DNA from: Klebsormidium nitens
Lineage: Eukaryota > Plantae > Klebsormidiophyceae
Reading direction: 5' to 3'
Assembly: GCA_000708835.1 (NCBI GenBank)
Contig: DF237023.1
Coordinates: 173,654 to 237,653, forward strand
DNA length: 64,000 nucleotides
Positions 3,547 to 48,300 of this stretch are shown piece by piece. The position numbers were made by a program, and so were the translations under genes. How positions within the stretch are numbered: position 1 is the stretch's first letter; every line of letters begins with the position of its first letter. Under the pieces are notes generated by a model. The model was not told the DNA's origin. It was given only the letters and a program-made list of their open reading frames with translations, and searched no databases.

Positions 3547-6500
3547 TCACGTGGTCCTTCGAGACGCTGCTTCAACGCAACCTGTTCGTAGACTGGATAC
3601 AAGCTCGACATAACCTTTCTGGTCTGGGTGGATATACCTGCAAGAAGGGTCCAACGACTGAGCAATCACACCTCCTGCGTTCAGTGCTGATTTCACCGAG
3701 TATCTTGCTCTTTCAGGTAGAAGTCAAGACACCTTTCGGGCTGCATCATCCTATAGACACTCATACGCGAAAGGCGCCAACCCTCTTTAAAGAACAGCCA
3801 CCAGAAGCAGAATAGGAACCTCAAAACAAGGGAAGCTTCGGAAAAGGAAAAGAAGAAGGTCTGTCAAAACTAGGAAGGCGCGTAACATTTGCGTAAAGCC
3901 ACTAAGATACTGTACATGAAAGTTTCTCATTCCCCCTGGAAACGCTGCCAGACTTCGGAACCGTTTGATGGCGCGATCCGCACTGTATTTCTTTCCCCAG
4001 TCGCTGAAAAGGCGCTGTCCAACGTGGATTGCAAATCTTTTCAGCGCAGGCATGAAATACGTACCCGTGTCTAACGAGGAAGTCGATGATAACCAACGCG
4101 ACGTTCGGCTTGTACTCATTGGACTTCCGTATCGTCTCCGCAACACGGGCTAGCGGCCAAAGCTCGAAAGACTCCACCTCGCCATCTGCGATTGACATCG
4201 TGGGAGCGGATGAAGAGTCGAAGACCAAGGTCGAAAGCGGCGGCGGATTTGATAGAGCTACCGTAGTGCCTTGAATCAGCATGAATTCTTGATTCACTAT
4301 GCACTGGAACCAGCTGTGGTTTGGCCTTTGCTTTTTCCTACGATCGGAGCAATCTGGATTTCTCCCTCAGGTCTTGAGGAGATGAGAACAATGAAACAGG
4401 TCCTCTACGCGGGGCGGAGAGTGTAGGCAGCCTTTCCGCGCAAATACCTCTGCATCCTGAACACTCCTCTTGGTAAGCGACCGGAACTGGAGTGTCAAAA
4501 TTCAGCGCCACAGGCGGAAATACTGTTACGACTCTCTCTGTGACGACGCGGTTCGAACTCGTACCTTGATTTTTCGGTTGAAAGTCGCTGGGCAGTTTCA
4601 GGTCGTAGACAAAGAGAACATCTCGCTTCGCTCGATTCTCGTCGGTGACCATCTCGTATGATACCGTGCCCGCCGCCGTCGCTCTGCGAACCACTGAACA
4701 TGTTGAGTCCCTCAAAGACCGGTGTATTGAAAACGATGCTCAAGCGACAAGTTGAGTTAGCTAGAAGTTTAAGCCGGGTGCGGCTGCGGAGCGAGTATTC
4801 TAGCTTTGCATCCGTCTTTCCGCCACTGCTCTGAAGCTCGAGATGCGCTTCGAATCCCGACATGCGGTGTCTGCTTGGAGGAACGCGACTCGTCATTTTC
4901 TGTGCAGGTGTCACGAACGAGAAGCATGTTCAATGACGGCTGGATAAAACGAACGATCATGATTTTCCTTGCGGTTTGTGCAAAAGGAATCTGGCACCAA
5001 AAATATGAACTCCGTTCTTCTCATCATTTGCCAGCATCATTCTTCCGTCACTCTCTAGAGTGAGTTGAGCATCATAGAGACCGTTCGAGTATTTGCCTGG
5101 TTGGATAACAGCTGCAACAGGTTCACGCAAGGACTACTATCTGAAACGAGTGACGTGCCAGAAAGGAAGCGGGTTCATCACGCCTCACCTCCGCGCCAAG
5201 TCCGGCGGAATTCCGGCCTCTTCTTGACACTCCTTCACCAGATTGTCTGCGCAGCTAAGCCCGAGCGGTTGTCCTCCCGCCACCAGGTGATCCAACCGGA
5301 GCGGCCAAGTCTGCTTCGTGGCGCTGCGTCGGGCCACCCAAAGGTATTTGTTTCCGTCGGCGTCTTCAGTGTAGCCGTTCATATGAACGCCATACGCCTG
5401 AGCGAAGGAAACGGTTGGGAAGACAGCCAAGTGGCCGCCGAAGCATTTTCTATGGGCCGTGATTATTGGGTGGAAGGTGTGGGAACGCCTGCGAGAAGTA
5501 TATCAGGATCGGTCTGGAAGGACGATAGACCTTTGCGATCAGGCAACGGGGCAAATAAGACCCGGGTGGCAAAGTCTTAGTAGCAGTATCCCCCAAAATT
5601 CACACATTTAGTTGAATCTTCGTCGCCCTTCTTTACCGGACTCGAACAGCATTTGACGTCAATTCGAATCCTAGTCCCAGTGTCTGCTCGTTGGACCTTT
5701 CTGCTGACTCACACCTCACATCTTAAAGTATCCTTCGCGGGCTGACGTCAATAATCGGAACAACGCATGTGGTCCATGTTCCTAATTCATGAGAGTCGAC
5801 TCCCACCTCGACGTCAGCTACTATTCATTGCTCGTACTTGGGTGTGAACCGATACAAAGCCCGATGCCTCCGGTCTCAATCTAGACGCAACGGAGGACTT
5901 CGAAAGAACGACTCACGATGATGCCAAAGTGGGGTGCAGCCGCCCTCTCAAGCCCAAAGTACGGTTTATTGTGGAAGCCTGTGGAAACGGGGTACAGCTC
6001 GTCTCGCCAGCCTGTGATGACACCCTTTTCTCTTAGCTCTGAGCAGACAGCGGCCACTGCTTTCGTACGCGCCTTTGGGGTCTTCAGGCTCTGATCAAGC
6101 CCGATGTAATGTCCAAGCGGGGACCCGTCTTTGGACCGTACAAAGTATACCTTGAAAGTATCGTCGAGGAGGAGCAGGTGCTCTGCAAAGCTGCAACAAG
6201 ACGTACTGTTGTTGGGAGTCGGTAAGATTGTCCGCATGTTTGTGCAGGTTGTATGTCCACGATACTTTTGGAGTTGCGTCTGAGCTCGCCCTACGCTTGA
6301 GTCACGCCTTGATAAAAGCAAAGTGGTTTCTCGTTATCTGATACTTATGATGGGGTATGGGGGGTGCATGGAGTGAGAAGTCTTGTGTCGAATGACTGCT
6401 ACGAATCAGTGCACGCGCTAAGAAGGAAGACATACTGAAGATAGTTTTCTTGACCTCTTTTGCGGCTAGTTCTCAGCTCCTAAAGAGGAATTAGAGTAAC

Positions 6501-8060: not shown

Positions 8061-11000
8061 ATGGGTGGAGCACGGATAAAGCAGCTGGGTCCTACAAACT
8101 CATTGGCGCCAATCGTGGAAGCGGCGGGCATCTGTTCTCAGGTCCCTTCAGCTCGCCTGCCTTCTCAATACGTTCCCCACTACCACCGCATGTCTCACAT
8201 TGCAACCTTCCACGAACTTCGCAGCATTGCGAAGTCCAATATCAATTCCTGCAACAGAAGTAGTAACCTGCACTCTAATGGCGTCGCACGACATTGGTTC
8301 AAACAACAGGCTTGGCGTGGCGCTCCTTCATTTACATGTCCAGATAGGGTACACCCGCCAAAACACGTCCACCGCTTAATGGCACGAGAAGCATATTCAG
8401 AGGGGAGGAAAGAGGAGCCAGGGCACCTGTTCTGCTTTGGCTTTGGTTACACCACCTTGGGCCTGGCAAACACACTCAAAAAGGAGGGCTGGTGAGCTCC
8501 CCTCCCAAATGGTACAAGGTGGGATAAGTGGTTGCTGATTGTGGTCAGCTGATGACTGCCCTGAGTTTGCCAAACATGTAGGAAGGCTGTGGCCAGTACG
8601 CTGGGGCTTTGGAATCAAAGAAAAGATGATTGCTCTCTTTGCTGCAACACTAATCGTCTGGCGGAGCCGCTTCGAGTATGGTATGATGTGCCATTAGTAA
8701 GGTGTTTTGGTTGTATTGACCTGACTTGATTCCTCTCTCCTACTTGCTCCAGGAATGTGACAGGGACCTGCAGATCAGAGGAGAAAAAGGAGGCGCTCAT
8801 TGCGAAAAGCCTCCCAGCAGTTATTTTTGACACTGATGGGGAGATCGGACTTGAGTAAGAACTGCCTCTAACCGAAAGGCCTCCTGGAAAGCGGGAAGCA
8901 TGTTGTAGCCTGGGGCCACCTGAGTAGAGATAGTCAGGGCGTCAGTCAACTCTGAACACAGCTAGGACATTGATCGAGCCTCGCCTGAGGGGAAGAGCTT
9001 TTACGGATTGTATATTCATGCCAGAACAATCGTCAGAAAAGAGTATCAATCAGTGGGAACTGAGGAGTGGCGTGAAATTGAGGGTTCCACTTTTCCCCCT
9101 GGTTGCCTCGTCAACCAGATCAATCAACTGTGGCAAAGTAAATGTCTGTGCTCAAGATGCGAAGGATTCCCTTTCAGCAGGCTCTATGATTACTGGTCTT
9201 AGAATCGACGTCGTGTTGCTGTGTCAGGTCCGATGGGCTGGCTGCTCTCCGAAGCGCCACACACCTGATTGCCAGCATCCCTCCTGTTGGTGACTTCGAC
9301 CAAGATCCGGTGAGTCGTCTCTTCCTTCTCCTTCTCGATCCTTGAATTAAGTATTGAGGCTCTGATCACAAAACTATCCCCCTTAATGAAAGAAGAATGA
9401 CGAGCGAACATGATGCCCGTGGATAAGCAGGTTGCTGTGTCAGCCCTGAAACGTTCTCTCTGTTATGCCCCTGCCTCATCGCTTCGTTTTAGAAGAGTTA
9501 GTAGGTTGTTCTCGAAGTGCAGTCCATCCTTCTGGTATCAGTGCATGTCAGTGCTTTGAATGAGTTGATAGCAATTCTGAAATACGACCTCTTTGAGTTG
9601 TTTGGCATCATACGGATGGTTCAAGTTACCATTATCCACAATGGATACGATGTATGTTGGACATGGAATCTTCCCGCTAAAAAACGGGAAGAAAATTGCA
9701 TAGTCGCCTCGAAGGGCAGCTGCTGCATTGAAAAACCCAAGTCCATTTCCTGAAAGCTTTTCTTTGTTGTTTCTGAAGGGCAGGCCCTAGCTTTGCATGC
9801 CCAACAGATCCACGAAGCAGCACGCAATGGGCTCAGCTGGATTGGTTACCTCAGCACGACAGGTGAGACGCAAACACCGCCACCCTCGTCATACCCGATT
9901 CTGGTTGCATGCCTTTCTGCTGCGGCCAGTGTAGTGATATCTTGCCCCTGAAGATAGATTATGATGCGAGATCATGTCTAAAAGCCGTCCTTCAATTGGG
10001 ATCAACGATCTGGTCATCCACAATCTCTCGACACTATGTCGAGGTCGACCTTCCGGCAGTTTGCGTTCAGTTCCCTCCTCGTCGCAAACGCTGCAGCAGA
10101 CCGCTATTCCAGCCCAGGCTTCATTCTGCGTTTCAGCAGACTCCAGTGTCAAAGTATCGAATTTCACAAAGACACACGGGCATTATTTTTGCACAGGTGT
10201 TTATGGGGACTGGGACGGCGCTTGGGTGGACGAGAGGTGAGCTAACTCGGCATATCATTGTAGCAACTCCCGGCCCCGTTCAAACCGCTAGGCACGACTC
10301 AAAGCATGCAGAGAAACGATTTCCTGCTGACATGAGGACCCCTCTAAAGCTCACACATACAAAACTTTCTGTCCCCCTTATTTCCAGCATTTTTCCGCAA
10401 CGAACTGTGGTTCCTCATGTCTCCCCGCAGGTTCTGCTTTTCTGCTCTCATCCCGCTCCTAGACCTCTGACCCTTGATTCCTGGGTTTCACCACTCCATG
10501 TCTGACACCTATCCTTCGAACCGTTTGAATCTTTCTGGTGCGCAACGACTTTTCAAAAGTCCGAAGGGTAAACCAATCATCAAACGGCTGGGTTTAGCGT
10601 CTGCCGAACCCTCGTGTCTTGGTTTGCAGCACCGAACCGCGACCCAGCAACGCCCGCGCCGCAGCGCGACTGCGCGCCGAGGAGGCTTGGCTGAGCATTG
10701 GCAGAGAAGCAAACGTTCCGGTGCACGTCTTCCGGCTGGGCGGAATCTACGGCCCTAGCAGGAGGTGAGCGGAAATGGAGCTCGCACCTTGGACGAATGA
10801 TCGAGCCTTCGAGCAATTTCATGACCACAGAAACAAGGCAGGTATCTGCAGAATTTTCAGACAGAACGATTAAAGGCAGCCACGCTGAAGGTGAACCCCA
10901 ACTGAACTCTCTGTGTTTTCAAGCGTCGAGTGCCCATTTGCCGGCCAAAGCTCTTAATCGAATTTTTCAGAAGTGCTTTGGAGAAGTTCGCAAAATTTGC

Positions 11001-13157
11001 ACAGATCCGATCGCACTTCCCCGTCTTGACGAGGAGATCCTTTCGATGCGCTGAGCAATAGACGCTTCCCATCGTTCCATCTGCAAATCGACAAGGCAAA
11101 AACTCTACTTCACCGTGTTGAAGGAAACAGAGCTTCTTCCAGGCACAAACCTTTAAAGCATTTGGCGTCGGCCCATCTGCGCATCTAGAGAAACTGCTCC
11201 CTTTTCTTCGGCGACTATTTTGTCACTACGTTCAAACGCGTCGCTCACTAAAGCCCCCTCCGATGTTTCGTACAGCGCCATAGACGTCGTCCGCTCCGGA
11301 CGGCCCGCCTCCCAGACGCAGCGCGTGCGGGAGTCGCGGCGCTTCACGTCGAGGTGCCACGTGGCGGACATCGTGCAGGTCGTGACGTCAGCCATGAAGC
11401 AGCCCGCCGCCGGAGGGTGAGGACTGTGACCTAGCTTCAAAGCACTTTCCGCTGGCATCCTCTCTGCATACTCGGAACATTTTGTCATTTTTGGTGTCTA
11501 CTTTCTATGCGATGAGGGTCTCGACCTGCGAACAAAAGCGGTTTCTCAACCCTGGTTCCGGATAAGGTTTGTTTCTGAGAAAGTTCGTTCTGAATCGCTG
11601 CTCGCCCAGTCCTTCTCCCGAATGGGGCAAAGCAGCTTGCGTTTCGAGCGTGCGGGATGCCACTGCGCTCACCTGCCCTTCTTCGGCAACATTCTGCCGG
11701 CACTTGTGAGCTCAAGCCCTACCAACCAGTTTTCTGAGAGTTGTCTCGATATCATGTTGACTAAGGGCCATGTTGACTAAGGAAAGGGCCCGGGGAACGG
11801 GTGGGGTTGGTTTGGGGGTTAGGTTGGGTACGGGTGCGGAGGCGTGTCATTTCTACGGTTTGGGTTTTTAGTTTTGTGTTTCCCCCGAGCACAGTCCTTA
11901 GTCAACATGCCCTTAGTCAACATCAAATCGAGAAGTATTTTTATGAGTACGTCCGATTGTGCACATTCGAGATGGCCGCTGTACACAACCGAGTCTTTCG
12001 GAATCTTCCCCCTAAAAGAGTTCCGGCGTGTGTTGCGTAGCCCAGTGTAATTGAGCAAGCAATGGGTGGCACTCTGAAACAAAAGCGTTCCGAGATATGC
12101 CTAGCTATCACACTCGATTACATGGCGGACCGCCCCCAAGGGGCGCCGGGGCTTGCCTCTTATTTGAGTTATAAGCGATATATTTCTTTTTTGTTTTCGG
12201 CGATCTGTTTCGAGAGTGAACCGTGCTGGTTCAAACACTGTATCTGGAGACATCAATAGTATCGTAGACTAAACTAGTGCCTATACGAGGTACGTTACCA
12301 GTGGGCAATCAATCAATCAAATTTGAGGTAACGTAGCCCTGCAAAAATGCGGGCCCTTTCGAGAAACATTAAATTTGCGTCGCTCTGCGGGGCAGTCCAA
12401 AAGCGGCGCTGTGGCTGGTGTGGCCTAATTTCCCAGAATCGCTGTACGTTTTATTGTCGAACACGGGGCAAATGCCGACAAAATCGTCAGACTGGCCACC
12501 CTAGCAGCTGATCGCCACGTCGTACAGCCCGGATTTTACAGTAAAACTACAACTTGCCGTTTTACTACGTAAGAGGCAAGCCAATATAGATTGTGGTAAA
12601 CATTAGCTCGTTCGAACCTGAGCCTACTAGAGTTGCGGATTCACTTCCTGCCTTCAAGGAATATGTCGAACTTTTACAGTCGAGTATACAACGTGGTGGA
12701 CGGCGACCCGGCGACGAGGCGAGAGGTCGTTACGTATGCCAGGGAGTTGCTTGAGAGGCGAGAAGCTGTCGAAAGGGTACCGGAGAATTCAACGAAGGCG
12801 GCGTGCGTGGAGTCTGATGTAACTGGTGAGGAAAGACCGTCTGGTTCAGGAGAGTTTGCTGAGGTCAGCAGGCAAGCAGGCACACCGCTTGTCCTTGAAA
12901 AAGGAAGCGGAGAGGCGAAAACCGAAGCTCTGGAGCATAGTCGACCTGCTGTGGATCGACAGCCGGAACGAGAAGAATCTTTGAGTCGCTTGGGTGCTGC
13001 GGAAGAGCGGAGAAAGGGCGTTGATGAGAAACGAGTGAAAAATGATCGGATAAAGCGGGAGTTGGTAGTGACGTTGCTGTTTCCTTCCTACAAAGAAGGA
13101 TTGGCAGCAATTGCTGACGGAGACCTCCAACCATTTGATGAACATGTCGGCCTCTGA
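8061..13157 (+). CDS. NAD(P)-dependent epimerase/dehydratase family, atypical SDR (YeeZ-like), with N-terminal targeting extension
   Basis: Eight phase-consistent exons: 8061-8491, 8753-8854, 9228-9309, 9784-9862, 10197-10236, 10630-10764, 11276-11416, 12680-13157. Motifs: HLFCFGFGY, VTGTCRS, THLIASIPP, WIGYLSTTGVYGDWDGAWVDE, RLRAEEAW, VFRLGGIYGPSRS, SRCHVADI, VYNVVDGDP, EKRVKNDRIK, LLFPSYKEGL. The start ATG choice is uncertain. Confidence 0.9.
11744..11933. mobile_element. MITE-like element (~190 bp) with ~40-bp imperfect terminal inverted repeats, in SDR intron 7
   Basis: Left arm 11744-11783 (tctcgatatcatgttgactaagggccatgttgactaagga) is the near reverse complement of right arm 11895-11933 (tccttagtcaacatgcccttagtcaacatcaaatcgaga). 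Each arm contains two copies of ATGTTGACTAAGG. No TSD identified. Confidence 0.75.
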
Positions 13158-34600: not shown

Positions 34601-37600
34601 TTGACTCGCCGGGTGCCAAACCAAGAATAGCAGTTCCTTCGATGCTCGATTCAGACTCCTATATTGGACGAGTCGCTGACCAGACGGCCCGTTAAGGTAA
34701 ACTTTTGAACAGAATTTCAAAGATGTGAGTTGCAATCCCCTGTACAGAGTGAACTCTTGCATCGTCCTCATGCCCGATAGGGTTGCGGACTCCTGTGACT
34801 GCGTGGCAGCTTGCGCACATATATCAGAATCACGAACAGCATAACACTAGACGGTACTCGGTCAGCCGCAGCTATTACTTAGACAATGGAGGGGCTCGAG
34901 GGCGTTTGCACCGCGCAGCTCTCCTGCAGAGTCATCAAAATTTGGTTCGAGGCAGTGCATGCAGGCTGACTAGTCACAGCTGAAACCTACTACCGGTAGT
35001 AGACGTAGTACTGGTAGTACCTACTTTTTAGGAGGTTCTTTGGAGACGTTTTGGGCAACTCTGCAGTTTGATTGGCTTATTGGCACCGTCTGCACTCTCT
35101 TACTCCCCTATGTTCTCTCTTGTAACTTGAGTGCCAATAATAACGGAACTTCGCAAGACTGTGCCGCTGCCCGGGTGGTTTCTGCAGTCGACTAACTGGT
35201 GCAGTCTAGTGCAGTATCCAAGAAGCGCCCGGGTCGGTGGGCACCCGGTGCTTGCAGGCCCCAGGGTCTGCGGTTCTCTTTGCCGGACAGCTTTGCCCTG
35301 TTGGTGGTCCGGCTGGTAACACTGCCTGTCACAAGTGGAGATTCCCTGGTGTGAACTCCTCTTTCAGGCTCCTGCGTATTGCAATCAATACCATGTTGCA
35401 TGGTGGACCCGATCAACCGGATCTTGCGGAGGCTATCGGGGCCTTATCGGGCCGGGCATCTTGAGGATAATAATGACCTACGATTGGTCTCAATCCGCCC
35501 GGCGCAAGCTTACCCGGCTCTGCCGCTACAGCCTATAGCCTCCTCGCTTCTAGTTGCGGTAAAACCGGCAGGGACTGGCCGCTTGCGGAAATTAATACGA
35601 GGGTATCAAGAACCTCTACAGAACCCCAAGCGGGCTCCTAGCTAGGGAATTTCTGTGTCCTGACTCCTGACTGCAATAACCCCAGCTTCCAGGAAGCACC
35701 TAGGCCTACAGGCGACGATACGGTGACCACGGACCACTGACATGTACGGGTTAAACAGGACCTACCTAATTCAGAAATTCTATGCAGACCACAGCACGCA
35801 CCGTAGTACAACCCGCTACAGTCTGGACTACCGGTACCTGCCTGAGTTGTCCAGCTGTCGCCGACTTCACACTTCTGGGCTACCCACAACAGGCAGGAAG
35901 TCCGAAGAAGTGCACTAGGACCTACGGTACCTACGGACCGGTAGCCAACTCAGGACTGTGATTGGCTGAGCCTGGAGTATATCAGGCTTGTCAAGACCAA
36001 AACATGCCCGGCATGGGCCTGGCATACACCATCCCGTTTTGAAAGGTCAGGATATCCTTGTACATCTCTGAGAGCATCATAGTCTGTGCGGCAATAGTAT
36101 ATGGGCAATCTGATCAATGTCAATGTTGCCAGAGTAAACACACGAGTATGATTGAACATGAAAGCAAGGATCTGAGAACTTTGCTGACGTTTATGCATGC
36201 TAAGAGATGGGTGGCAGGAACGAAGTGCTTTTAACGCTCTAGCAACAACCCTCAATTCAGTTCACAGCGTGTCATATAAGGGGCATATAAGCAGGTTCGA
36301 AATATCTCTCTCCTAATCTAGAAGTAAACCCTTATGTCTGACCAGAGATAGAAGCGTGTTCTTGGTCACTACAGCTAGAATAGAGTGAATAGGGCTGCTG
36401 AGAACTTCTTAGGGACAGAGGATGAGAGCTGGCTGCTGCTTAAGGCAAGTTTTGAATGATATCATGATCATGATAGAAGCAAAAATGAGCAAGCATTTGA
36501 AATCAGGTAAGATCATAGCTGCCATCTTGCACATAACAAACATAAGAAAGCAAATCTAACCAGCCAGACAGTCAAGCAAGGCGTTGATGCTCTCTAAGGG
36601 CTTTAGCGTTGATCAGTATCACACCTGAAAGAAGGAGGCCGAGAGATGACGTCAATGTCGATGTTGCCGGACCGCTCATGTTGTTGCTTGCAGAACCACC
36701 GACTATTTGGACTTTAGATGGTGCGCTGCTGCCAGCTCTCATCCGTGTTTCTTCACTTCATGGTAGCTGCTAGCAAAACTTTGCTTTGGGGAAAAGAGAA
36801 GGCAAGAATCTTGCCTTCTTCTTTTCTAAATGTCTGTTCCAGCAAAAGGTGATTTTACCACGGATTCTGAAAGCGGGGTAACGTTTTACTACTTCGAACT
36901 CAAAAGCGTAAGTTCGACAGCCTGAAAAGTATATCTATAGCACCTAGAGACGATGCAGAACGTCTCCACCGTTACAATTATCAGATTGCAAGCTTTTGAT
37001 TGGGCGGATTCTATCAACCAAATCAAAGCCAGGCCTTGATCTCGAAGCTGGATGCGAGAGATGAAGAGATGCGGGGGCAGAGTTTAGGCTCGGAGTTTGA
37101 TTGGCAACAATTCGATCATCCCGACCGTCGATTCTGAGTCTGACGGTTCTGTACCGTCATTCAGCCTGACCGGGCTGTGTACGGTTCCGACTCGGACGTC
37201 CGGACGGAGTGAGTGCAGGCGAGTCCGACTTTGTGCCCGATTGGACGCAACTACCGTAGTATGGCCAAGTCGTATCCATGAACCCTATAGCCTATAGGTA
37301 GTCCACCAGTACTACCGTACTTATTCGAATATCCGCAAATTTGCGAATTTTCGACGTTCGTAGTTAGTCGAAAATTACGGTTCTCTGCTAACGAGAACGC
37401 TAACCCGATTCGCGGCTTTTCAAGCCGCGCCTCTTGTGACTTCGTCTTCATTCTGTCGCTCTGCAAGACGAAGTCACAGCGCAAGGAGGACGGCGCCTCC
37501 TCGCTTCCCCTCGAAAGCATCTGTTTGTTCCTCTTTTGCTTGCTTCCCATGCTTTAGCACCATTGAAGCTTAGTGACTTGCTCCAGGTTCCTTCATGCAG

Positions 37601-37760
37601 AACCGTTGGACGTTCTGAAAGACTGGCAATTTGTAGCTTGCTTACAGCTCCAGTTCGTCAGATCATCCTACTTCTTTTGGTGCTTCGAGCTTTCGTATCA
37701 TCTTAGTGCTACTTTTGGTCCGTTCATCAACTACAGCGAGAGTTTCTTGCCCCATGCACG

Positions 37761-38735
37761 ATGGCTGGACCTGGAGATGATCACTCTGCTCAGGAGACCA
37801 CTGGGATGACTCCAGAGGACTTTGCGAAGCAGGCCAGGGAAGCAACCCTCCGCAACGAAGCTCTATTTTCCAAGATCTCCCAGCAGCTGTCTGAGCATGC
37901 AACACAACAAGCCGCACATCTGGCCAAGCAGTCCGAGAAGATTGATCAACTGCAGTCCCAGATCCAAGCCAAGACTGCTCCAAAGAGATCTGATCGCATT
38001 GGGAATCCTGAGGTGAAGAAGCACATGGAGCCGTTGGAACAGGCACAGCATGTCATCTCTCAGGCGAAGTCTGTCTTCGAGGATCATCTGGATGGAACTT
38101 CGCCCCTGTCTCAGCTCTCGGAAGATCAAGTCGCTGCCCTCAAGAATCAGTGCGATGAAGGTGAGAGAGCCATTTCTGACCGCATGCAGTTTCTTGAGGA
38201 CTGGGATTCAGAGGGGCTGGAGATTGCGTCTGAGATGCTGCGTCTGAGGGATGAGGCATCCAAGGACCCCGCAGAACTGAACCTGGTTTCTCGTGCTCGG
38301 AAATCCCTGGCTGAAAAACGCAAGGCTTCAGAGGAAGCATCCAAACCTCCCAAGGAACACAAAACTCAACAGTACCAAAACCCTAGCAGAGGCAACTTCC
38401 AGAACAGAGGCCGCTCTCCCTCTCCGTCTCCGTGGTTCCATCCTCCTCAGCCTATCCTGATGCCTGCTCCCCTGCCAGTTCTCCCACAGCCAAGCCCTGT
38501 CCCATCTCCCATCTACCAGAGCCAGTATTTCCCTTCCAACCGCACCCCCTCTCCTGCTCCTGGCCTCCCCCCTCCTGCTATTCCTGCCCCTGTTCCTCGC
38601 GCCCCAAGCCCCTCCATGACTAGTGGTCGCATAGCAAACCTCCAGTGCTGGTCTTGCCAACAGTATGGACACGTGGCAGCAACTTGCCCTAACTCAGCTA
38701 GCATAGCAGCCAACGCTAGTCGAGGTTACTTCTAG
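37761..38735 (+). CDS. DIRS gag-like ORF1 (324 aa): coiled-coil N-terminus, Pro-rich linker, CCHC zinc knuckle
   Basis: ATG at 37761, TAG at 38735; CWSCQQYGHVAATC fits CX2CX4HX4C. Confidence 0.85.
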   Translation: MAGPGDDHSAQETTGMTPEDFAKQAREATLRNEALFSKISQQLSEHATQQAAHLAKQSEKIDQLQSQIQAKTAPKRSDRIGNPEVKKHMEPLEQAQHVISQAKSVFEDHLDGTSPLSQLSEDQVAALKNQCDEGERAISDRMQFLEDWDSEGLEIASEMLRLRDEASKDPAELNLVSRARKSLAEKRKASEEASKPPKEHKTQQYQNPSRGNFQNRGRSPSPSPWFHPPQPILMPAPLPVLPQPSPVPSPIYQSQYFPSNRTPSPAPGLPPPAIPAPVPRAPSPSMTSGRIANLQCWSCQQYGHVAATCPNSASIAANASRGYF

Positions 38736-40130
38736 ATCTCAGCGCTTCGGTAGTCATGACACAAACCGAGTAATCAGTCGAGTTCTGTTCCTAAGTGCTT
38801 GTGGAGAGTTAGCTGCCAGAACATTGAGGGTTTGAAGTGAGCAGAAGACTTTATAGGGTACCTTTGAACAGATGTACTTGTAATGGTCCAGACCTTCAGT
38901 GTAATACTTAGAGCTGCGGATGAGGCAATGCCTAGAACACCACTGTAACATTTGCATCGTTTCACCCTGATTGTATTAAGCTCTCCACCACATTTCAACT
39001 CTCATTGCTTGCATCGTCTTTTCAATCTCTTCGCCTCGTCATAGCCAATGATTCTTCTGTTCTTATTTCCCCTTCAATGCTTGCATTACTCCCCATTCTA
39101 GTTTTCGTTCTGACTCTATGAGGCTGCTAAAACTTACTATAGGATTCTTTTGGCATGTCCTGAAGGCTGATATCTTTGTTCCTTCTTTTCAATCTCACCT
39201 CCTTCGCTTCTTCAGTGGTTTCCATCCCTTCCGTTCCGTTCACATTCCGCTCAACCGCTCTGGCTTTCCGTTCGCAAGGTGCCTCGAGTCCCTTTAAAAC
39301 CAATTTCCTCCCTTGTTTCATCGCTTTTCGTAATTCGTTCAGTCGAAGTTGATGTTCGTATCCTGCATTTGTTTTATCAATCTTTAAACAATTCTGTTTA
39401 TGTCCGTTCCTGTTTCTCCGTTCCGTTATTTTCTCCGTTCCGTTTACGTTCCGTTGATGTTGACGTTATCGTTCCGTTGCAGATTTTTCTTTGACGATTA
39501 GTATCAATCTTCAGTCCGTTCAATTTCCAAACACTTCCCAGCTTCAGGGGGATACCTCGTTCTTGTTTTCCGGTTACAGTTTCTTTTCTCATCCCTTTCC
39601 GATTTCGAGTTCGTTCCGTTCACGTTGAACGTTTCTTCCGATTTTCACCCCGCTCTAGTTCGTCCGTTTTCTGCCCGATTTTCTTCAGTGTCTTCGTTTC
39701 AGTCGGCGTCAACCTTGTCGCTGTCGTTGCTATAGACAGACTTTCCGGTTTCACCAGTTCTCTCTTCTCTGCTTTTCACGCCCCGGTTTTTGCTCCTCTA
39801 GTTTAAATAAGCGCTGCCACGTGGCAGGCTGTGATTCGTGCTATTTGGGAAGCAACGTTTGCTCCCAATTGTTGTACCCATATCGATCGAACCTGAGCCG
39901 CTTGCGTATCTCGTCTTCTTTGGCAGCGCTTCGTGTCCCTCGTCGTTAGAAGGAGAAATTTTGCTCGGTTTCCATCTTTCATTTGTCCTGCCTCGGAGAG
40001 GATGCTCTCTTGAGAGTTTCATCCCATAGTCTGAATCTATCCTGGCTGATCCGAGGCCCGTTCAAGCTTCTTCTGTGTTTCTATTTTGTGATTCCCGTTC
40101 TCATGTTTCGGTTCTCTTCCTTTCTTTCCG

Positions 40131-42233
40131 TTGTTTGCAGCCACTGAGGAGTCTTTGCACAAACTCGCCGACTTGACTGATGCCGCCGAATTTGAGGGGT
40201 TCCGCGATCCGGCTAAGAACGCGGCTGCGAAGGAGTCCGCCCCCAAGCGCGAGCCCTACCTGCGTCACAGGCTCCGCCGTCATGTCGAGTTCTGGCAGTC
40301 CTTCGTCACCTCTAGCTTTGTGATGGGAATTCTGCTGTCTGGCTATATGCTGCCTTGGTTATCTGGCCCCCCAACTGAGCCTCACCGCTTTCCTAACCAT
40401 CCGTCAGCCTTCGAGCATGCCAGCTTCGTCACGGATGCCGTCAGCAGCCTCGCCGCGACCGGCACAATTCAGCCTGTTTCCGACCCCCCCTTCCTAGTTA
40501 GTCCTCTAGGAGTCGTACCTAAGGCGGAAGACAAGCTGCGCCTCATCTTGGATCTTCGTTTTCTCAATCAATTTCTTCAAATTACGAAATTCAAGGACGA
40601 GTCGATCAGGATGATCTCGGAGCTGTGCCTGCCCAAGGACCTCCTGTTCACCATCGACCTCAAGGCGGGGTACCACCACATCGACATCTTCGAGCCGCAC
40701 TGGAAGTACTTAGGCTTCCAGTGGCGGGGCCAGTATTACGTTTTTACACAACTTCCTTTCGGTCTGGCGCCTGCGTGCTACGTTTTCACGATGGTGATGC
40801 GCCAACTCACCAAGTCCTGGCGCGCTCGCGGGTATTGTCTAGTTCATTACATTGACGACTTCTTTTTTGCCTGCCGAAGCTCGGCCGAGTTTGCCCGCGT
40901 CCAGGCGTGCGTACTTGCAGATCTTGCGGCTGCTGGCTTTGTGGTTTCTAAGGAGAAATGCCAACTCAAGAGCAGCCACGTGGTGAAGTTTCTTGGTTTC
41001 GTAGTGGACACCCTGTTCGGTCATTTTCGCCTGACAGCGCTGCAAAAGAGCAAGCTGCACTCCGCCATCGAGGCGTGCTTCCGCAACCCCCGGTCCGTCC
41101 CTGCGAAAACCGTCGCTCGCGTTACAGGCCTGATTACCTCCCTCTTGCTAGTTACAGGGCCTATCTCGGGTCTCTTCTCGCGCTTCTTGCATCGAGCCTT
41201 AGCTACTCGCTCTTCCTGGTACAGCAAAGTGCAGCTCGATAGCGCAGCTTTAGGCGAGCTTCTTTTCTGGAAGGACCGGCTTCCTCGCTTTGAAAGCCGT
41301 GACATCTGGCGTAAGCACTCCGTGCTTCGCGTTCTGTTTTACGACGCCGGCGGTCAAGGTTGGGGCGGGCATTTGGAGATTGGCTCTGAGCAGCACGAGG
41401 CGCACGGTTCCTGGGAGGCACACGAGGTGCATGGCGTGGCTTCGTCCACGTGGCGGGAGCTGTCTGGTCTTCTCCGGTTGCTTCGCGCTTTTCGACCTCT
41501 CCTAATCGATTGCACAGTCATCGCGCGCGGCGACGCGCTGAACGTCTTCTCTATCCTGTCCAAGGGCGGTTCTGCTAAGGAGCATTTGCAATCAATCTGC
41601 ATCGAGCTTTTTGCGTTCTGTTCCGGGCAGCGGATCGAGCTTCGACCGGAATGGCTGCCGAGAGAGGAGAACGCGCGCGCGGACTACTTGAGCAAAGTTC
41701 GTGATGTTGACGACTTCGGGCTTTTTGCGGAGGCTTTTGCTTTTGTTTCAGCGCGTTTTGGTCCGTTTACGGTCGATCGGTTCGCCAGCGAGCACAATGC
41801 AAAGCTCCCTAGATTCGACGCGTCTTACTGGTGTCCCGGCGCGGCGGCCGCGAACACTTTCATCCAGGATTGGGGTGGCGAAGAGAGAAACTATTGTTTC
41901 CCTCCACCGAATCTCGTCGCTCCGACGCTTCGGCACGCGCGCGCGTGCCGCGCGCGCATGACGCTCATTGTGCTCAGCTGGCGCTCTGCTCCGTGGTGGC
42001 CGCTCCTGTGCGGCAGCGTGGACTCCGGCCGGGGGTTCGCACCGTTCGTTCGGCAGCAGCTCTACTTTCCTGCGGGGCGCGAGGTCCTGGTCCCCGGTCG
42101 TGCGTTGCGTGACCGGTTCTTTGGGAAAGGCGTTCCCATTTCCGACGTGTTCGCACTTGACATCGACTTCCGCGCTCAGGTTAGCGTCCTTTTGTCGTCG
42201 CTCAGTCTTTCCTATTCTTATTCCTTTGCTTAA
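40131..42233 (+). CDS. DIRS pol: reverse transcriptase + RNase H + DAM-methyltransferase-like domain (5' end probably supplied by splicing at 40141)
   Basis: RT: SPLGVVPK..KLRLILDLRFLN, TIDLKAGYHHI, LPFGLAPA, HYIDDFF, KFLGFVVD. RNase H: YDAGGQGWGG, SSTWRELSG, GDALN, WLPREENARADYLSK. MT-like: FTVDRFASEHNAKLPRF..WCPGAAAANTFIQDW..NYCFPP..W..APWWPLL. Confidence 0.93.
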   Translation: MFAATEESLHKLADLTDAAEFEGFRDPAKNAAAKESAPKREPYLRHRLRRHVEFWQSFVTSSFVMGILLSGYMLPWLSGPPTEPHRFPNHPSAFEHASFVTDAVSSLAATGTIQPVSDPPFLVSPLGVVPKAEDKLRLILDLRFLNQFLQITKFKDESIRMISELCLPKDLLFTIDLKAGYHHIDIFEPHWKYLGFQWRGQYYVFTQLPFGLAPACYVFTMVMRQLTKSWRARGYCLVHYIDDFFFACRSSAEFARVQACVLADLAAAGFVVSKEKCQLKSSHVVKFLGFVVDTLFGHFRLTALQKSKLHSAIEACFRNPRSVPAKTVARVTGLITSLLLVTGPISGLFSRFLHRALATRSSWYSKVQLDSAALGELLFWKDRLPRFESRDIWRKHSVLRVLFYDAGGQGWGGHLEIGSEQHEAHGSWEAHEVHGVASSTWRELSGLLRLLRAFRPLLIDCTVIARGDALNVFSILSKGGSAKEHLQSICIELFAFCSGQRIELRPEWLPREENARADYLSKVRDVDDFGLFAEAFAFVSARFGPFTVDRFASEHNAKLPRFDASYWCPGAAAANTFIQDWGGEERNYCFPPPNLVAPTLRHARACRARMTLIVLSWRSAPWWPLLCGSVDSGRGFAPFVRQQLYFPAGREVLVPGRALRDRFFGKGVPISDVFALDIDFRAQVSVLLSSLSLSYSYSFA

Positions 42234-42243
42234 ATTTTTGCAG

Positions 42244-43313
42244 ATTGGTTTAACTTTGAAAGCTGGGACCTCCACGCGGCCGGTCTGCCGTCCGCCGACC
42301 CGGAACTTGCCAGACTGTCTGTCGATCTTCACGATGCCGCCCTGCTTTGCCGCGCTGCCTCCACGTTTCGTACCTACTCTGGGCCCTGGAAACATTACAA
42401 GCAGTGGTGCCAAAAGAAGGGGGTCCCCGCTTTGCCTTCCAGCCCCTTGACAGTCGCGCTCTACATGATGCGGCTTCTCCGCACCGCCAACACTCCTTCT
42501 CCTTTGATGACGTTCTCTGGCGCAGTGTACCTGAATCACTCACTTGCTGGCCTTCCGTCCCCGACGAACCACCCTCTCGTTCAAATGGCACGCGAGACGG
42601 CCCGCCGGATCAAAGTTGCTGGTAAAAACCAGAAAAGGCCGTTTCTCGCTTCACAAATCCGTCGCCTTTTTGAGCTTTGGGGTAGTTTTTCAGCCAACCT
42701 CCACCAACTTATGAAGCTTACTGCCATCACCCTTTGCTACACATCATTCCTGCGTTACGACGACCTGGTTGCAATTCCCTGGCAGTCTATCAAGTTCGTC
42801 GCTCAGTCCCACATGGAGCTCTTCATTCCGGACAGCAAAACCGACCAGTACCGCAGGGGCGAGACGATTTACATCGCTCGCTTGGGTGGTCCATTCTGTC
42901 CCGTCAGCTTAGTCCAACGCTTGCTCGAGGTCGGCCAGTACCGCCTTTTTGGCAACGGTTCCCTGATTCGCTCAACGCTGATTTTCCCTCCTAGCCAGCG
43001 CATCAAGTCTACCGCACCGTGCTATTCTACCGTTCTTGCTTGGTTCAAGGAGGCAGCTTTTGTTTCCGGTCTCGATCCTCAGTACTATGGCACCCACTCG
43101 GGCAGACGCGGCGGCGCAACTGGCGCCGCTGCTAACGACGTCCCTGATCGCCTTTTCAAGGGCCACGGCCGCTGGCGCTCTGAACGTGCAAAGGACATGT
43201 ACGTGAAGGAGAAGCTTCAGGCGAAACTTTCAGTGACCCGGAACCTTGGCCTTCAGGAAGATATTCCCATTGCCCAACTCCGCGAGTTTGAGCGCGAAGC
43301 CTGTTTGATCTGA
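42244..43313 (+). CDS. DIRS tyrosine recombinase (N-terminal SAM-like domain + catalytic domain)
   Basis: The frame is open from 42234. N-domain RAASTFRTYSGPWKHYKQWC..LPSSPLTVALYM; catalytic residues FLRYDD (R), SKTDQYRRG (K), THSGRRGGAT (H..R), GRWRS..KDMY (W, Y). The first ATG, at 42465, is inside the domain. Confidence 0.92.
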
Positions 43314-44058
43314 TACTGTTGTTGTTGCATCTCAGGTACGCCCTAGTCCTCTTCTTTATTTCATTCCTTCTTGTTTTCCTGCTTCCTTCCACCTTCCTCA
43401 TTTCCCATAACCTCCTCTTAACCTCACTCTAAACCCTTTCCGTGCTGCTGTGTTCTGTGACGCCTTGCACGAGCCACTTGCCAAACCTCGTGCTTCATCA
43501 CATCTCACTGTCATTCGCTGCAGTGCACTTGCAGTGCACTGCTGCTCATTCGCAAGTTCTCGTTTATAGCAGAGAACCTGGAATTCGAGTGTGGAGTCGG
43601 AGTCAGTGTGACGGTCCAGGGGTTCTGGCGGGGCGCCAAACGGGGCGCAGAGCGCCCCCGGGCAGATCCTGGCGCCCCAGGGCGGCAGCCCGGGGCGCCA
43701 GAGCGCCCCGGCCCGAAGCCCCGAGGAACTATCTGGCCTGGGCAGGGCGGCCGGCCGCGCCCCAGGGTCGCGGCTGGGCACCCCGGGCCGGAGCCCCGAG
43801 GCGCCAAAGCGCCTCCGGGCAAAATCCTGCTAGAAGAGTAGCCACGGTACGCCGTACGGTACTCCTAGTCGGCTGGCTGGCTGGCCAGCGCCTTGTCGCC
43901 ACTAGCGAACCATATCTGCAGAGTGCATAATGCAGCTGCACCTGCCTGGGAAATTTGCCTGTCTGCGAAATAACCTTCAACCTTCGAAGTTCGCGATTCA
44001 CCGGGCACCTACTCGATCTCAATTTCAGGTTGACTTACCGTATATGAATTGATGGCAA

Positions 44059-44243
44059 ATGTTCACATTTATCATTGACTTGTGGACAGTGCTCGGGGAC
44101 AAGAACAAAACCAGAACCCTCAACCCAGAATTAACAAGCTCCACGGTGAGTCCACACCCGTACCCACCCTAACCCCCAAAGTTCAAACCAACCAGACCTG
44201 TCTCCCGGGCGTCCTCCTTGATAAACAACTTGATTGAACATGG
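44059..44243. mobile_element. Diverged second copy of the 11744-11933 MITE-like element, inverted orientation
   Basis: Its reverse complement contains ggttggtttg..gggggttagggtgggtacgggtgtgga and ttttgttcttgtccccgagcactgtcc. These match ggttggtttgggggttaggttgggtacgggtgcgga and ttttgtgtttcccccgagcacagtcc in copy 1. The TIRs are degraded. Confidence 0.65.
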
Positions 44244-45386
44244 AGCCACGAAGCCTGTTTCTTTGTCTCTCGAATACCTATCACCAGGTTCCTCGGGAGG
44301 GCCTGAAAACAGCTACCGGTCCGTCTAGGCCGACTCATGAGCTAGAGAGCAAGACTTGGTATTCTCTCCCGGAACTTCCGAACACAATCCAGGAGTGAAA
44401 ACCGTGCATGTCAGATTCCTGTTTTAGCTAGCAGGTACCGTGAACCGAAGCGTTCATGACTGCCAGCCTGCATGCCGGGCACAGGCTGGCGGGAGAGCTT
44501 TGAGAGTCGACCCTGCGTTTTAGGACGGCTGGCCAGGGGGCTCGAGCCTGCCTGGGTCTACCTACATAGGCGACTGGCCTGTCTAGGCTCTACCTACCGG
44601 TATTTGCGGATAAGCACAGAACCTACTAGTACTAGGCTATAAAGCAGCAGAAGCTAGCTACGTATAGGTAGTACGACGCCGTTTCTACTACGGTACAAAT
44701 AAAAACAATCTACCGTACCTACCTAGGACCTAACGTAGACTGTAGTACCGGTATTATACGGTTAGGTAGGTACAACAAATTAGGTAGGTACCGTCTTAGT
44801 GCCCACTGCCTTGGTTCTTAGCTCCGCCGCCGTTCGCCTGCATGGGGTATTATGGGGGGCGACTGGGCAGCGCTGAGCGGGCAAGTCAGCGTGGATGTCG
44901 TCAGCGTGCGAACAAAATGTCGCCAGAAAACATATGCATAACGACACGGCATGATGCCTGAGCAGTACGTGAGGATGAGCAGTGCCGAATGCTGAGGCGG
45001 CGGCGTTTTAGCCCTCCGAACAGCTTTCAATATATATGATCAACCACGGCCAACTTGCCGGAGGAGAGCTTTCAGTACGCTTTCAGTAGGGCTGCAGATT
45101 GCTTATGAGCAATGTTCACAAAGCAGCTGGACGCAGCTAGTATGCGCAGCGTTAAGCATTACCAGCCTGTAACTGCGCCTTACATGCCATAGAGTGACTT
45201 GATGACGTAATAGTAAGGCTATAGCTGCAGTCACGGACATTCAAGACGCTCTTGCACAATTGGTACAAAGGAGCTGAGTTCGTCGCACCACCCGTCATTT
45301 CTCACTTCTCAAACTTTCTCAAGTGCTCCTCCAGCTACAGCCCACCATCGCACCAAATCAGCTGAAAGCGCCACTGGCAGCCAGCT

Positions 45387-48300
45387 ATGAAACCCGCCCA
45401 CTCTGTGCTCCTCTTCGGGGCCCTCCTCGCTGTTGCCGCAATTGCGGACGCCACCACCACCTGTAGTTCTGGCCGTTCTGGCAGCGGCACGTGCAAATGT
45501 GATGGCAGCGGTTTCGGCGTCCGGGGCAGCTGCAAGACTGAGAACAACTGCAACACCAACAAGAACTTCATTTTTGGAGCGTCTAACACCTGCCAGTGTA
45601 AGTCCGGCTACTATAAGTACAGTTTGACTACTTGCAAAACGTGCAAAGATGCGGCGCATACCTCCAAGACAACTTCATCATGCACACCGCCAGTAACCTG
45701 CCCCAGTGGCCACAGAGACGGGGGGTCAGGCAAGTGCACGTGCAACTCCAATATCCCCGCCGAATTGAGGACCTCGAAGGACACTTGCAAGTGCAAATTG
45801 GGCCAAGGGAGCACCGGTGTCTGCGGCGACCCGGTAAGCAATCTTACCGCCTTTATTTTGCTGTTGTCTTTGGTCCTGATTGGTGCAAGTCTGCTCAAGC
45901 ATTGCCTTGCCAGTCAACCTCTGATAAGGTGTCCCTTGTCAAGGGGATTTTTGCCAAAATATGGTATGAAGCAACAATAGGTGCACTTGGTGGCTTGGTG
46001 GCCAGAACTGCCAGTAAAAGGAAAAGCTGGGCTGCAGCTAAGCACTCATGCAGGCACACAGCTTTGGAGCACACCCAGCTGATTGAGTAGGTTTCACAAG
46101 TTCTAAAGCGAAAGGCGCTTCCTTTGTTTGGGATGCAGAGCTGTGTCCTTTCGTCTCTAAGTTCTTTCTGCCAGCTTGGTTGTTGACAAATGCACTCGCC
46201 GCTCCTTTGCAGCATTTCATCGGAGGCAATGGCGTCAGGTACGACTTCCACGGTGAGTACTCAGCAGCTCCTTTCTTCTTCAAGGGTTGTTGTCTAGTAG
46301 ACACGCACACGCTTTGACAGTAGGCTGCAGTCAGAGACCGGAAGTCTGTCAGCCAGCTGTCCTCGCGAATACTGGTACAAGGCTTTACATATATCACCTT
46401 GAATGAAATGTTACTCTGCTTGTACACATAATTCGGTCGAATCAACTTTTCTGCTGGGGTGTGAGACCAAGCATCCCTCAGATTCTGTTTGAGAGCCTTT
46501 CAGCAGACCTGTGTTATGTGAACACTTGCCTTCTAATACGGCCTCCTCACGTGTTTGCTCCGTCACAGGATGCGAAGTCCAGGGTTGTCCACACTTTGAC
46601 GAATTATTGACCAGGCAGCTCACAGTCTTCCCCTTCTTCTGCAGGTGTCCCTGAGAAGTCCTTCTGCCTCATTTCCGACAAGGCCTTCCACCTGAACGCT
46701 CACTTCATCGGCCAAAACGGCCTAGAGACTGGCATGGACGGCACCTGGATGGACCAGCTTGGATTTGTCTTCGTGTCTGGCAGCAAGCAGCACTCCCTCT
46801 CCGTGCACCTTGTCTCTGTAAGTTCCCTACCTGCAAATTGCAAACTACATGAAGTGATCTCTATGAGAGGGATACATACTTGGAAATCAAAGCTCTCTTG
46901 GGTTTGTACCCCTCTCCTGCTTGCTTCAAAATGAGGGTCAGGCAAGACGAGATTATATGCTAGTGGATGCCAATCCAAGCATACAACACATGGTGATCTA
47001 CAAATTTTGCTGCTTGCTTCCTCAAAATGTGCTCTCTCAAGTGCATGCCTCTGCATGCTTTTCAAAACACCATCTTTTAGAAGCCTGAATCAGCAGTACT
47101 TTTCTTCCTCTCTTCTTCTGATTGCCTCCGACTGTCTACATATGTGACGGCCCTGCCAATCCTCCCCCAGAACAGAGCGCCTGACTTTGTTCACAAAGCA
47201 ACTGACCTTTACTCCTCCTTTGCTGTCCAGGAGGAGGACTTCGCCAACGAGGTTTCAGACGTCTTCGTGGTGGCTTACGACTCTTCTCCCATCACTGTCA
47301 GCCTCCCCACCAGCGGCAAGAACGTGTGGACGTCCGATGACGGCCTTGTGACCATCTCTCGGACGTCCGAGGTGGCCAGGCTGACCCTGACGCTCAAGGG
47401 CCACTTCCAGACGACTCTTACCGCCAGCGAGCACGAGTTCCCTGACGGTCACCACATCGACTTCGATGTTGACGTCATGAACATCACCAGTACGTTATCT
47501 CACCCAAAAACACACGCCAGAGTATTATTGCCATTCTGGTGACTTCTCTAGGCTTGCAGAATCTTCAGTTCCTTCGTTTGCCGCGCTTCGCTCTTCAGTA
47601 GGTCCGTTAGTCCTTCCGAAACCGGCTAGCCATGAAACGGCTATCTGCAAGGGTTGGGAGTGCTGTAGCAAAAGAAATGTTTGCAAGCAATTTCCAACCT
47701 CTGCTCAAGAGCGCCTGCCTCGATCCTTTTCTCCTTGTTTCGGTGGCTCGCTTTCCTGGCCCCTCACTCGCTTTCCGCTGGCCTCTCTCGCTCACTTCTC
47801 TTATTCCATATACTCAAAGTACTGTTCCCTTTTCTTGCAGACTCTGCTCATGGCATCCTGGGGCAGACCTTCCAGCCGGAGCGCCTCCACGTGGTTGCTG
47901 GCAGCGCCGAGAAGAAGATGGACCAGGCCGACGTTGTCGAGGGCGGCGATCACGGTGAGCCCTCCGTTCCACGTGTGTCGCCAGTTGTTGGAATAACAGA
48001 ACAGATGAAAACAAGGCCTTTATGTCAACTGTGGCTCACAGCCTCGCATGGTGCCGTCTGAATTTGGACAAGACTGGCGCTACATACGTATGCAATCTTT
48101 TCGCCTTTGTGCGCTGGTGAGGAGTTTTCTTACGTTCTCTGGTTGAAGACCTTTTTTAAGAAGCTTTGGACCAGGCATCAGGCTCTGCAAAGCCGATCAG
48201 CGAGCTCTAAGCAAGAACGCCAGGTCGCAAGGGCGTGTCTAGAGCTTAAGGAGGCTCCCTCTCTCTTTGACGCTGGTCGAGAAGCCCTGTCTTGCGTCAC

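Follow-up and report, generated by a model that had tools for sequence, protein, structure and literature searches.

The locus described here raises the question of how a retrotransposon can produce two enzymes whose reading frames open without a start codon. It lies within a 64,000-nucleotide (nt) stretch of contig DF237023.1 of Klebsormidium nitens, referred to below as the window and providing the coordinates for all positions, in which nucleotides 37341-43576 of the plus strand are one copy of a tyrosine-recombinase (YR) retrotransposon. Its coding regions are gag, pol, which specifies reverse transcriptase (RT), RNase H (RH) and a methyltransferase (MT), and YR. A first-pass annotation of the window had suggested that pol and YR are reached by alternative splicing from a single donor within gag. 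Judged by comparison among related copies, the splice sites involved are real, agree in phase and are under selection that exceeds what coding requires, and the pol and YR enzymes appear to have no other evident route of translation. The coding parts are as follows; throughout, a slash within a splice motif or a pair of coordinates marks the cut.

37761 to 38735, plus strand: gag open reading frame (ORF), 324 amino acids (aa), with a helical N-terminal half, a proline-rich linker and a CCHC knuckle that is read in the ORF translation.
40141 to 42179, plus strand: pol exon (RT-RNase H-MT), entered in phase 1, recognized by Pfam, by an annotated protein and by sibling copies.
42244 to 43313, plus strand: YR exon (Cre-like tyrosine recombinase), entered in phase 1, recognized by a profile compared with PDB.

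For comparison we used eight close copies, approximately 70-77% identical to the window in coding DNA (four in the K. nitens assembly, namely L001, L002, L003 and L010; three on JGI contigs, L007-L009; and one, L006, on a Logan contig), together with four distant copies (L004, L005, L011 and L012). The nine close copies referred to below are the window and these eight, and the gag alignment comprises seven copies. As the first-pass annotation had noted, the first in-frame ATG of pol is at 40323 (residue 61 of the exon) and that of YR at 42465 (residue 74, inside the Cre-like N-terminal domain). The pol ATG is not conserved, with leucine at that position in siblings P0002, P0004 and P0005, and the residues that precede the first ATG are conserved. 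Independent start codons for the two enzymes, an outcome that would speak against splicing, were sought by walking upstream in frame from each exon; they are absent in nine of ten copies, where a stop is reached before any ATG for both exons. In the window, pol and YR share one frame and are parted by a lone TAA at 42231-42233. Among the copies, the gag-to-pol and pol-to-YR frame relations each take all three values, and what is conserved is the phase of the splice sites. Because these relative frames vary, no frameshift, readthrough or overlap mechanism can be conserved, and all three were ruled out as a shared solution.

The donor from which both enzymes would borrow a start codon had been placed at 38160/38161, in phase 1 of the gag frame and with the reading GAAG/GTGAGA, and both its coordinate and its phase are correct.

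37761 to 38160, plus strand: coding part of proposed exon 1, comprising Gag residues 1-133 and the first base of codon 134.
38158 to 38166, plus strand: candidate 5' splice site AAG/GTGAGA, cut at 38160/38161, phase 1.

This donor, GAAGGTGAG, is identical in all seven gag copies. The gag of the window contains 33 GT dinucleotides, three of which are kept in all seven copies; the one at 38161 is the sole phase-1 site among them, and the other two are in phase 2 and forced by Trp codons. Synonymous positions provide a further measure of constraint. The same degenerate residue occupies 92 codon positions in all seven copies, and the codon itself is invariant at only eight of these. The donor codons GAA GGT GAG (E133-G134-E135) account for three of the eight, and the hypergeometric chance that three named codons would all be invariant is ~5e-4. 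The distant gag subfamilies represented by L005, L004, L011 and L012, with 30-38% identity, keep G/GT at the same Gly codon, followed by a purine (GAAG/GTATTG, CAAG/GTATCA, GAAG/GTATGT and CAGG/GTAAGC). The residue after this conserved Gly varies among E, I, M and K in the subfamilies, and GGT is kept throughout.

The two acceptors had likewise been read correctly. The pol acceptor, TTTGCAG/ at 40140/40141, is followed 2 nt later by the pol frame (phase 1, G+CC=Ala), and the YR acceptor, also TTTGCAG/, is at 42243/42244 (phase 1, G+AT=Asp).

40100 to 40140, plus strand: candidate pol 3' splice region, with a branch-like CTCAT at 40100-40104, a pyrimidine tract and GCAG/.

Before pol, GCAG/ is present in all nine close copies and also in L004 and L005; CTCAT occurs 27-40 nt upstream of this acceptor in eight of the nine, with a pyrimidine content of 78-90%. 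Before YR, CAG/ATTGGTT is found in all nine close copies, with equivalent sites in L004 and L005. In every copy, similarity to the others resumes at the very AG of each acceptor, such that pairwise identity is 0.43 in the 30 nt before the AG versus 0.76 after it for pol, and 0.40 versus 0.81 for YR. The last 40 intron bases are 72-90% pyrimidine at both acceptors and end in an invariant (G or A)CAG/, and branch-like motifs, CTCAT for pol and of the CTTAY type for YR, recur 20-40 nt upstream amid otherwise unrelated sequence. Both acceptors are in phase 1 in all copies, including the subfamily with 56% identity. Conservation of sites and phases across copies had been named in the first-pass annotation as a means of checking the proposal, and the gag donor and the two acceptors are kept, each in its phase, in the close copies and in the distant subfamilies.

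In the splicing programme that these sites suggest, unspliced RNA would provide full-length Gag and the template for reverse transcription. Joining the gag donor (38160/38161) to the pol acceptor (40140/40141) would generate Gag(1-133)-Ala-RT/RH/MT, a Gag(1-133)-Pol protein that would end at a stop before the next donor, within the retained 64-nt intron between pol and YR, or soon after entry into an out-of-frame YR exon. Joining the same donor to the YR acceptor (42243/42244), with the pol exon skipped, would generate Gag(1-133)-Asp-YR. In these terms pol would be a cassette exon whose inclusion leads to the Gag N-terminus joined to Pol and whose skipping leads to the Gag N-terminus joined to YR, and it is expected to behave in this way because it has a conserved donor of its own at its 3' end (42179/42180). 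An internal pol exon bounded by real sites would be the simplest reading, and it extends the earlier model rather than replacing it. Gag is conserved along its full length down to the last residues (13 relatives), which indicates that Gag is also made whole and that the unspliced reading is used as well. The splice from the gag donor to pol is likely to occur, and the direct splice from this donor to YR would be an even call. The full three-product switch appears plausible and well supported, and the case for and against its operating as a whole is about level. That the junctions form, how often they do so, and that the Gag N-terminus would bring the enzymes to the particle are points that we infer, the last of them purely so.

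The donor at the pol 3' end was not mentioned in the first-pass annotation, and it gives rise to an alternative reading.

42177 to 42185, plus strand: second candidate 5' splice site, CAG/GTTAGC, at the pol 3' end, cut at 42179/42180, phase 0.
42180 to 42243, plus strand: candidate 64-nt pol-YR intron, with the TAA at 42231-42233, a branch-like CTTAT at 42217-42221, a pyrimidine tract and TGCAG/.

An AG/GT stands right behind the last conserved pol codons in all nine close copies, and TG/GT stands there in L004 and L005. Six copies lack a stop ahead of this site, and in these it is in phase 0; in L001, L002 and L010 a stop codon precedes it. If it were joined to the phase-1 YR acceptor, a Pol-YR fusion would never result in the close family, since either the phases mismatch or a stop comes first. 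For the window, in-frame removal of the 64-nt intron was rejected because the donor is in phase 0 and the acceptor in phase 1, and no other GT or AG could serve. A conserved donor that closes the pol exon in all copies nevertheless speaks for the alternative that only the gag-to-pol splice is used and YR is obtained from a fully spliced exon 1-pol-YR mRNA by readthrough, reinitiation or frameshifting. If the short intron is spliced out, YR lies in frame downstream of the pol stop in L001 and L002, and a direct in-frame Pol-YR fusion results in L005. However, YR would be out of frame in six of the nine close copies, the window included, as a result of a phase-0 pol donor and a phase-1 YR acceptor; the pol donor of L010 is in phase 2, there is no slippery site, and no pol-YR frame relation is conserved. 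The phase of the YR acceptor, by contrast, equals that of the gag donor in every copy. We consider expression of YR from such a fully spliced mRNA unlikely. The distant relative with 56% identity differs in its layout: at L005:3755-3845 the pol donor reads TCTG/GTGAGT, the YR frame is open across the gap and an ATG lies upstream. L005 may use an overlap or fusion layout instead.

The region between gag and pol was examined as the possible site of other signals.

38736 to 40140, plus strand: non-coding gag-pol spacer, the 3' part of the proposed intron 38161-40140.

These spacers cannot be aligned between copies and range from 760 to 1827 nt in the close copies, with 603 nt in L005. On the sense strand they contain 63-68% C+T in the seven copies measured (window, L001, L003 and L007-L010), and they are strand-asymmetric (T 37-40%, A 15-20%) without mutual similarity. 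The spacer of the window contains CGTT 28 times versus 9.4 expected from shuffles, mostly as CCGTT or ACGTT, and the first 200-250 nt past the gag stop are of ordinary composition. Unconserved, variable in length and T-rich, the spacer resembles a plant-type intron. Rfam and tRNA scans of the element, spacer included, were empty. Several candidate signals were considered and discarded. There is no conserved small exon, as the spacers share no similarity at all; of the poly(A) signals sought after gag (TGTAA, AATAAA), three TGTAA occur in the window copy and are not common to the siblings. A donor-like CGAG/GTTACT near the gag 3' end (38724/38725), which would have allowed an Ogre-like removal of the gag stop, is in phase 1 in the window and L003, has lost its GT in L008 and L009, and is in phase 2 in L001.

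Such a spacer might instead hold an internal promoter, from which pol and YR would be expressed independently of the gag donor by non-AUG initiation, from a downstream AUG or through a short unrecognized 5' exon. Its length (603-1827 nt), its peculiar strand-asymmetric composition and its excess of CGTT would suit that explanation, with which the RNA contigs described below do not conflict. Yet no block of the spacer is conserved even among copies that are 75-77% identical in their coding parts, no AUG is conserved, and L008 and L009 have lost the donor-like site near the gag 3' end while L001 has it in phase 2. An internal promoter would also leave the synonymous constraint on the gag donor unexplained, and we regard it as rather improbable.

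Several points from RNA and protein searches weigh against the three-product switch. None of the listed sequencing runs contained the window copy. Transcript contigs from four runs of the same species, each from a different study, were aligned to 37341-43340 at 80% likeness; they include no contig of the window copy, no informative joint and no spliced RNA. Only sibling gag contigs were recovered, one of them 1482 nt long at a depth of 48.7, and these run through GGTGAG unspliced at the donor. The absence of sibling pol and YR sequences from these contigs says nothing, as such sequences are too diverged to align at 80%. Exon-by-exon protein searches with pol, YR, Gag 1-140 and Gag 1-133, the last of these against 1.84 billion protein representatives, returned no protein joining the Gag N-terminus to Pol or to YR, with the sole exception of P0006. 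This gene model of locus L010 uses the donor equivalent to 38160/38161 and joins it to a site inside pol; it is an ab initio prediction and not evidence. The sequence comparison has reservations of its own. The conserved CDEG at the donor is also a protein motif, and the donor falls in the middle of a helix (residues 121-151 in the AlphaFold2 model). The copies are related, and copy counts are therefore not counts of independent events. The splicing scheme in its first-pass version leaves the role of the pol 3' donor unexplained, and in L005 the pol donor is in phase with YR across just 37 nt and ATGs are present upstream.

Another possibility is that the splice-like signals are kept for other reasons, such as a protein motif combined with codon bias or relics of exon definition, and that pol and YR are no longer expressed and the copies are relics. 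The four runs yielded no pol or YR RNA at a likeness of 80% or higher, the window copy lacks the 3' repeats A2 and B2 described below, and frameshifts or a stop are present in L004, L007 and L008. In many copies pol and YR nevertheless remain long, intact ORFs despite a protein divergence of 20-45%, which requires purifying selection on translated products. A relic would also be difficult to reconcile with a donor formed by three adjoining members of the small invariant set of synonymous sites, and with the retention of GGT in four distant subfamilies irrespective of the next residue. We consider it very unlikely that the copies are relics of this kind. The sibling gag transcript recovered at a depth of 48.7 in run X1, and also in X4 from another study, has a peculiarity of its own. 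It covers window positions 38004-38716 with 153 rather than 519 letters between 38165 and 38685, and is thus shorter by 366 nt (122 codons); this could represent a deleted gag gene or an internal splice, and its 3' end matches L002.

Splicing of Gag-Pol from a donor further 3' in gag is scarcely credible, for although models P0001 (38622/38623 to 40141), P0003, P0004, P0028 and P0048 join a C-terminal part of gag to the pol acceptor, each does so from a different donor whose GT is not conserved, and their pol-YR joints disagree too, as is typical of ab initio prediction. The donors of P0005, P0011 and P0012 were rejected along with those of P0001, P0003 and P0004, as all differ and none is conserved. 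The K. nitens model P0001 (1120 aa, window 37761-43830) is itself chimeric, leading from gag at 38622 into pol and from the end of pol into the middle of YR before ending in a G+C-rich flank. At sibling loci the models are joined in other ways that do not agree with one another.

The proteins that the gag-donor splicing scheme would link have the following features. Gag has at its C-terminal end a CX2CX4HX4C knuckle, evident in the translation although the zf-CCHC match (18.8 bits) is under the cut-off of 20.8; across 13 relatives, the four knuckle columns (C, C, H, C) show little or no variation. AlphaFold2 places helices at residues 18-72, 83-110, 121-151, 153-166 and 175-194. The coiled coil proposed earlier for the Gag N-terminus is borne out as far as its long helices are concerned, and the coiled coil itself goes beyond what the model shows. 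In pol, RT spans ~40515-41003 (RVT_1, 4.9e-19), RNase H ~41331-41696 and the Dam-like MT ~41730-42008 (Dam, 1.4e-6). The PF05869 Dam match scores 28.5 bits against a cut-off of 28.1 at residues 534-626, which puts a putative MT after RT and RNase H. The RNase H matches of pol are weak (RVT_3 0.068, RT_RNaseH 0.085), and several relatives show RNase H Pfam families. Identity of the pol ORF is 100% to P0001, a K. nitens protein annotated as 'reverse transcriptase', and 80-86% to siblings, and many relatives with 54-90% identity occur in the K. nitens genome and in Klebsormidium-like contigs. A metagenome scan for further copies was blank. The Pfam Phage_integrase match of YR is weak (0.11); a profile of YR and its relatives compared with PDB matched Cre recombinase at 7.8e-28 across both domains, and the catalytic residues R170, K198, H284, R287 and Y319 are invariant or nearly so. 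No ORF of the element matched Pfam rve or RVP, in keeping with a YR in place of a DDE integrase and with no aspartic protease.

Outside the coding regions, the element is delimited by its repeats and untranslated parts.

37341 to 37513, plus strand: A1, the 5' terminal repeat, which matches the 5' and 3' repeats of siblings.
37514 to 37760, plus strand: 5' leader from A1 to the gag ATG, which would be the untranslated part of proposed exon 1.
43314 to 43576, plus strand: 3' untranslated region, which includes the internal repeat B1 (43452-43576); L007, L008 and L009 are similar to the window copy as far as 43576.

Counterparts of A1 are found twice in L007 (3801-3975 and 9468-9645), L001 (5621-5755 and 11632-11766) and L010 (4631-4810 and 10475-10654), and no second A1 copy is present anywhere in the 64-kb window. 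The siblings L007 and L010 have split direct repeats in the order A1...B1-A2...B2, with the internal repeats 3' of YR. In L007, A at 3801-3975 equals 9468-9645 and B at 9353-9474 equals 10122-10243, and L010 is alike; in both, B1 is followed by A2 and then, ~480-555 nt further, by B2. The window copy has A1 and B1 only, with no A2 or B2 after B1, and L009 looks alike. A deletion by recombination between B1 and B2 would yield such a copy. Lacking A2 and B2, the window copy is probably immobile, although its ORFs are intact.

The PAT-like group of the DIRS order, which includes Pat1, Toc3 and Kangaroo, has been defined previously (PMC4157794, PMC7192593), and by the criteria of these papers the window element is a PAT-like YR retrotransposon. 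The split direct repeats, the MT, the zinc knuckle and a co-oriented YR 3' of the MT place it with Pat1-type rather than DIRS1-like elements. The arrangement A1-B1-A2-B2, with direct terminal repeats, is found at the family level in the siblings, and no inverted repeats were detected in 35000-46000, where DIRS1-like elements would have inverted terminal repeats and an internal complementary region. The DIRS label of the first-pass annotation holds for membership in the YR-encoding DIRS order; its set-off against classical DIRS1 does not, as relatives with split direct repeats place the element in another branch of the order.

Comparison with known systems clarifies what would be unusual in this expression scheme. 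The combination of RT/RNase H, Dam-like MT and YR with split direct repeats (L007, L010) is shared with Pat1, Toc3 and Kangaroo, and the zinc knuckle in Gag with Pat1-like elements, while the YR, unlike that of Kangaroo, is in the orientation of RT. The element is unlike PAT-like elements in that pol and YR have no start codons, conserved 3' splice sites precede both and a conserved donor lies inside gag, and the window copy differs further by its lack of A2 and B2. Like DIRS-1 of Dictyostelium discoideum, it encodes Gag, RT/RH, MT and YR but neither a protease nor a DDE integrase (PMC7192593). In DIRS-1 the terminal repeats are inverted, an internal complementary region is present and the ORFs overlap (PMC7192593), in contrast to the direct repeats, non-coding spacers between ORFs and variable frame relations seen here. 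An overview of DIRS1-like elements leaves introns and splicing unmentioned (PMC3266345). Our full-text literature search returned no report of introns or splicing in DIRS-order expression.

Splicing is part of the expression of several other retroelements. The Ty3/gypsy element Ogre has an intron that is spliced between its ORFs, as PMC3735527 cites from Steinbauerova 2008. In copia and BARE splicing makes a Gag-only RNA, in Bagy2 it serves env, CRR is also spliced, and in retroviruses at large splicing likewise determines protein output (PMC3735527). The present element would be like Ogre, copia, BARE1, Bagy2 and CRR in that splicing of its own transcript decides protein output; it would be unlike the Ogre and copia types in that splicing would remove most of gag, be the sole route to both enzymes and involve two alternative acceptors.

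Retroviruses offer a parallel. In avian leukosis and sarcoma viruses the major donor is inside gag and Env starts with the first Gag codons, and foamy viruses produce Pol from a separate spliced mRNA. If spliced as proposed, the element would resemble retroviral subgenomic mRNAs in having one 5' donor and several acceptors, in using unspliced RNA as both Gag mRNA and genome, and in having gag lend its AUG. It would be unlike them in that 133 rather than 6 Gag residues are shared, in that RT/RH/MT and a recombinase rather than Env are expressed and in not being an LTR element. A tentative extension, which we hold with some doubt, is that the whole Klebsormidium PAT-like lineage, with at least four gag subfamilies, uses alternative splicing in the retroviral style, the choice of splice setting the ratio of three products and the Gag tag delivering both enzymes to the particle.

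To our knowledge, the ratio of Gag to enzymes and the expression of the recombinase are poorly understood in the DIRS order, where overlapping ORFs are the textbook picture. Should the junctions prove real, splicing would control the expression of both enzymes in a retrotransposon that is not an LTR element, for which we found no earlier description, and this would represent a convergent version of the retroviral scheme, in which one donor serves several acceptors. The element would then rely on the host spliceosome and yet have to keep its introns through reverse transcription, so that only unspliced RNA could be the template. There are practical consequences for annotation as well: the public K. 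nitens gene models at these loci are inconsistent chimeras, and transposon annotation based on ORFs would call such copies defective for want of start codons.

Some minor features were observed around the element. Past its end at 43576, where siblings continue with A2, the segment 43577-43860 is G+C-rich with GGGGCGCC- and GGCGCCCC-like words. It is translated by gene model P0001 as its own C-terminus and may be another insertion or a rearrangement breakpoint. Approximately 500 nt upstream of the element, at 36791-36826, is a 36-nt near-perfect palindrome (92% over a 37-column self-match). Just 3' of the element, 44084-44210 forms a short dispersed inverted repeat with 11788-11897 (69% over 128 nt), and L002 carries a related piece behind its own copy, with 44151-44213 matching L002 4423-4480.

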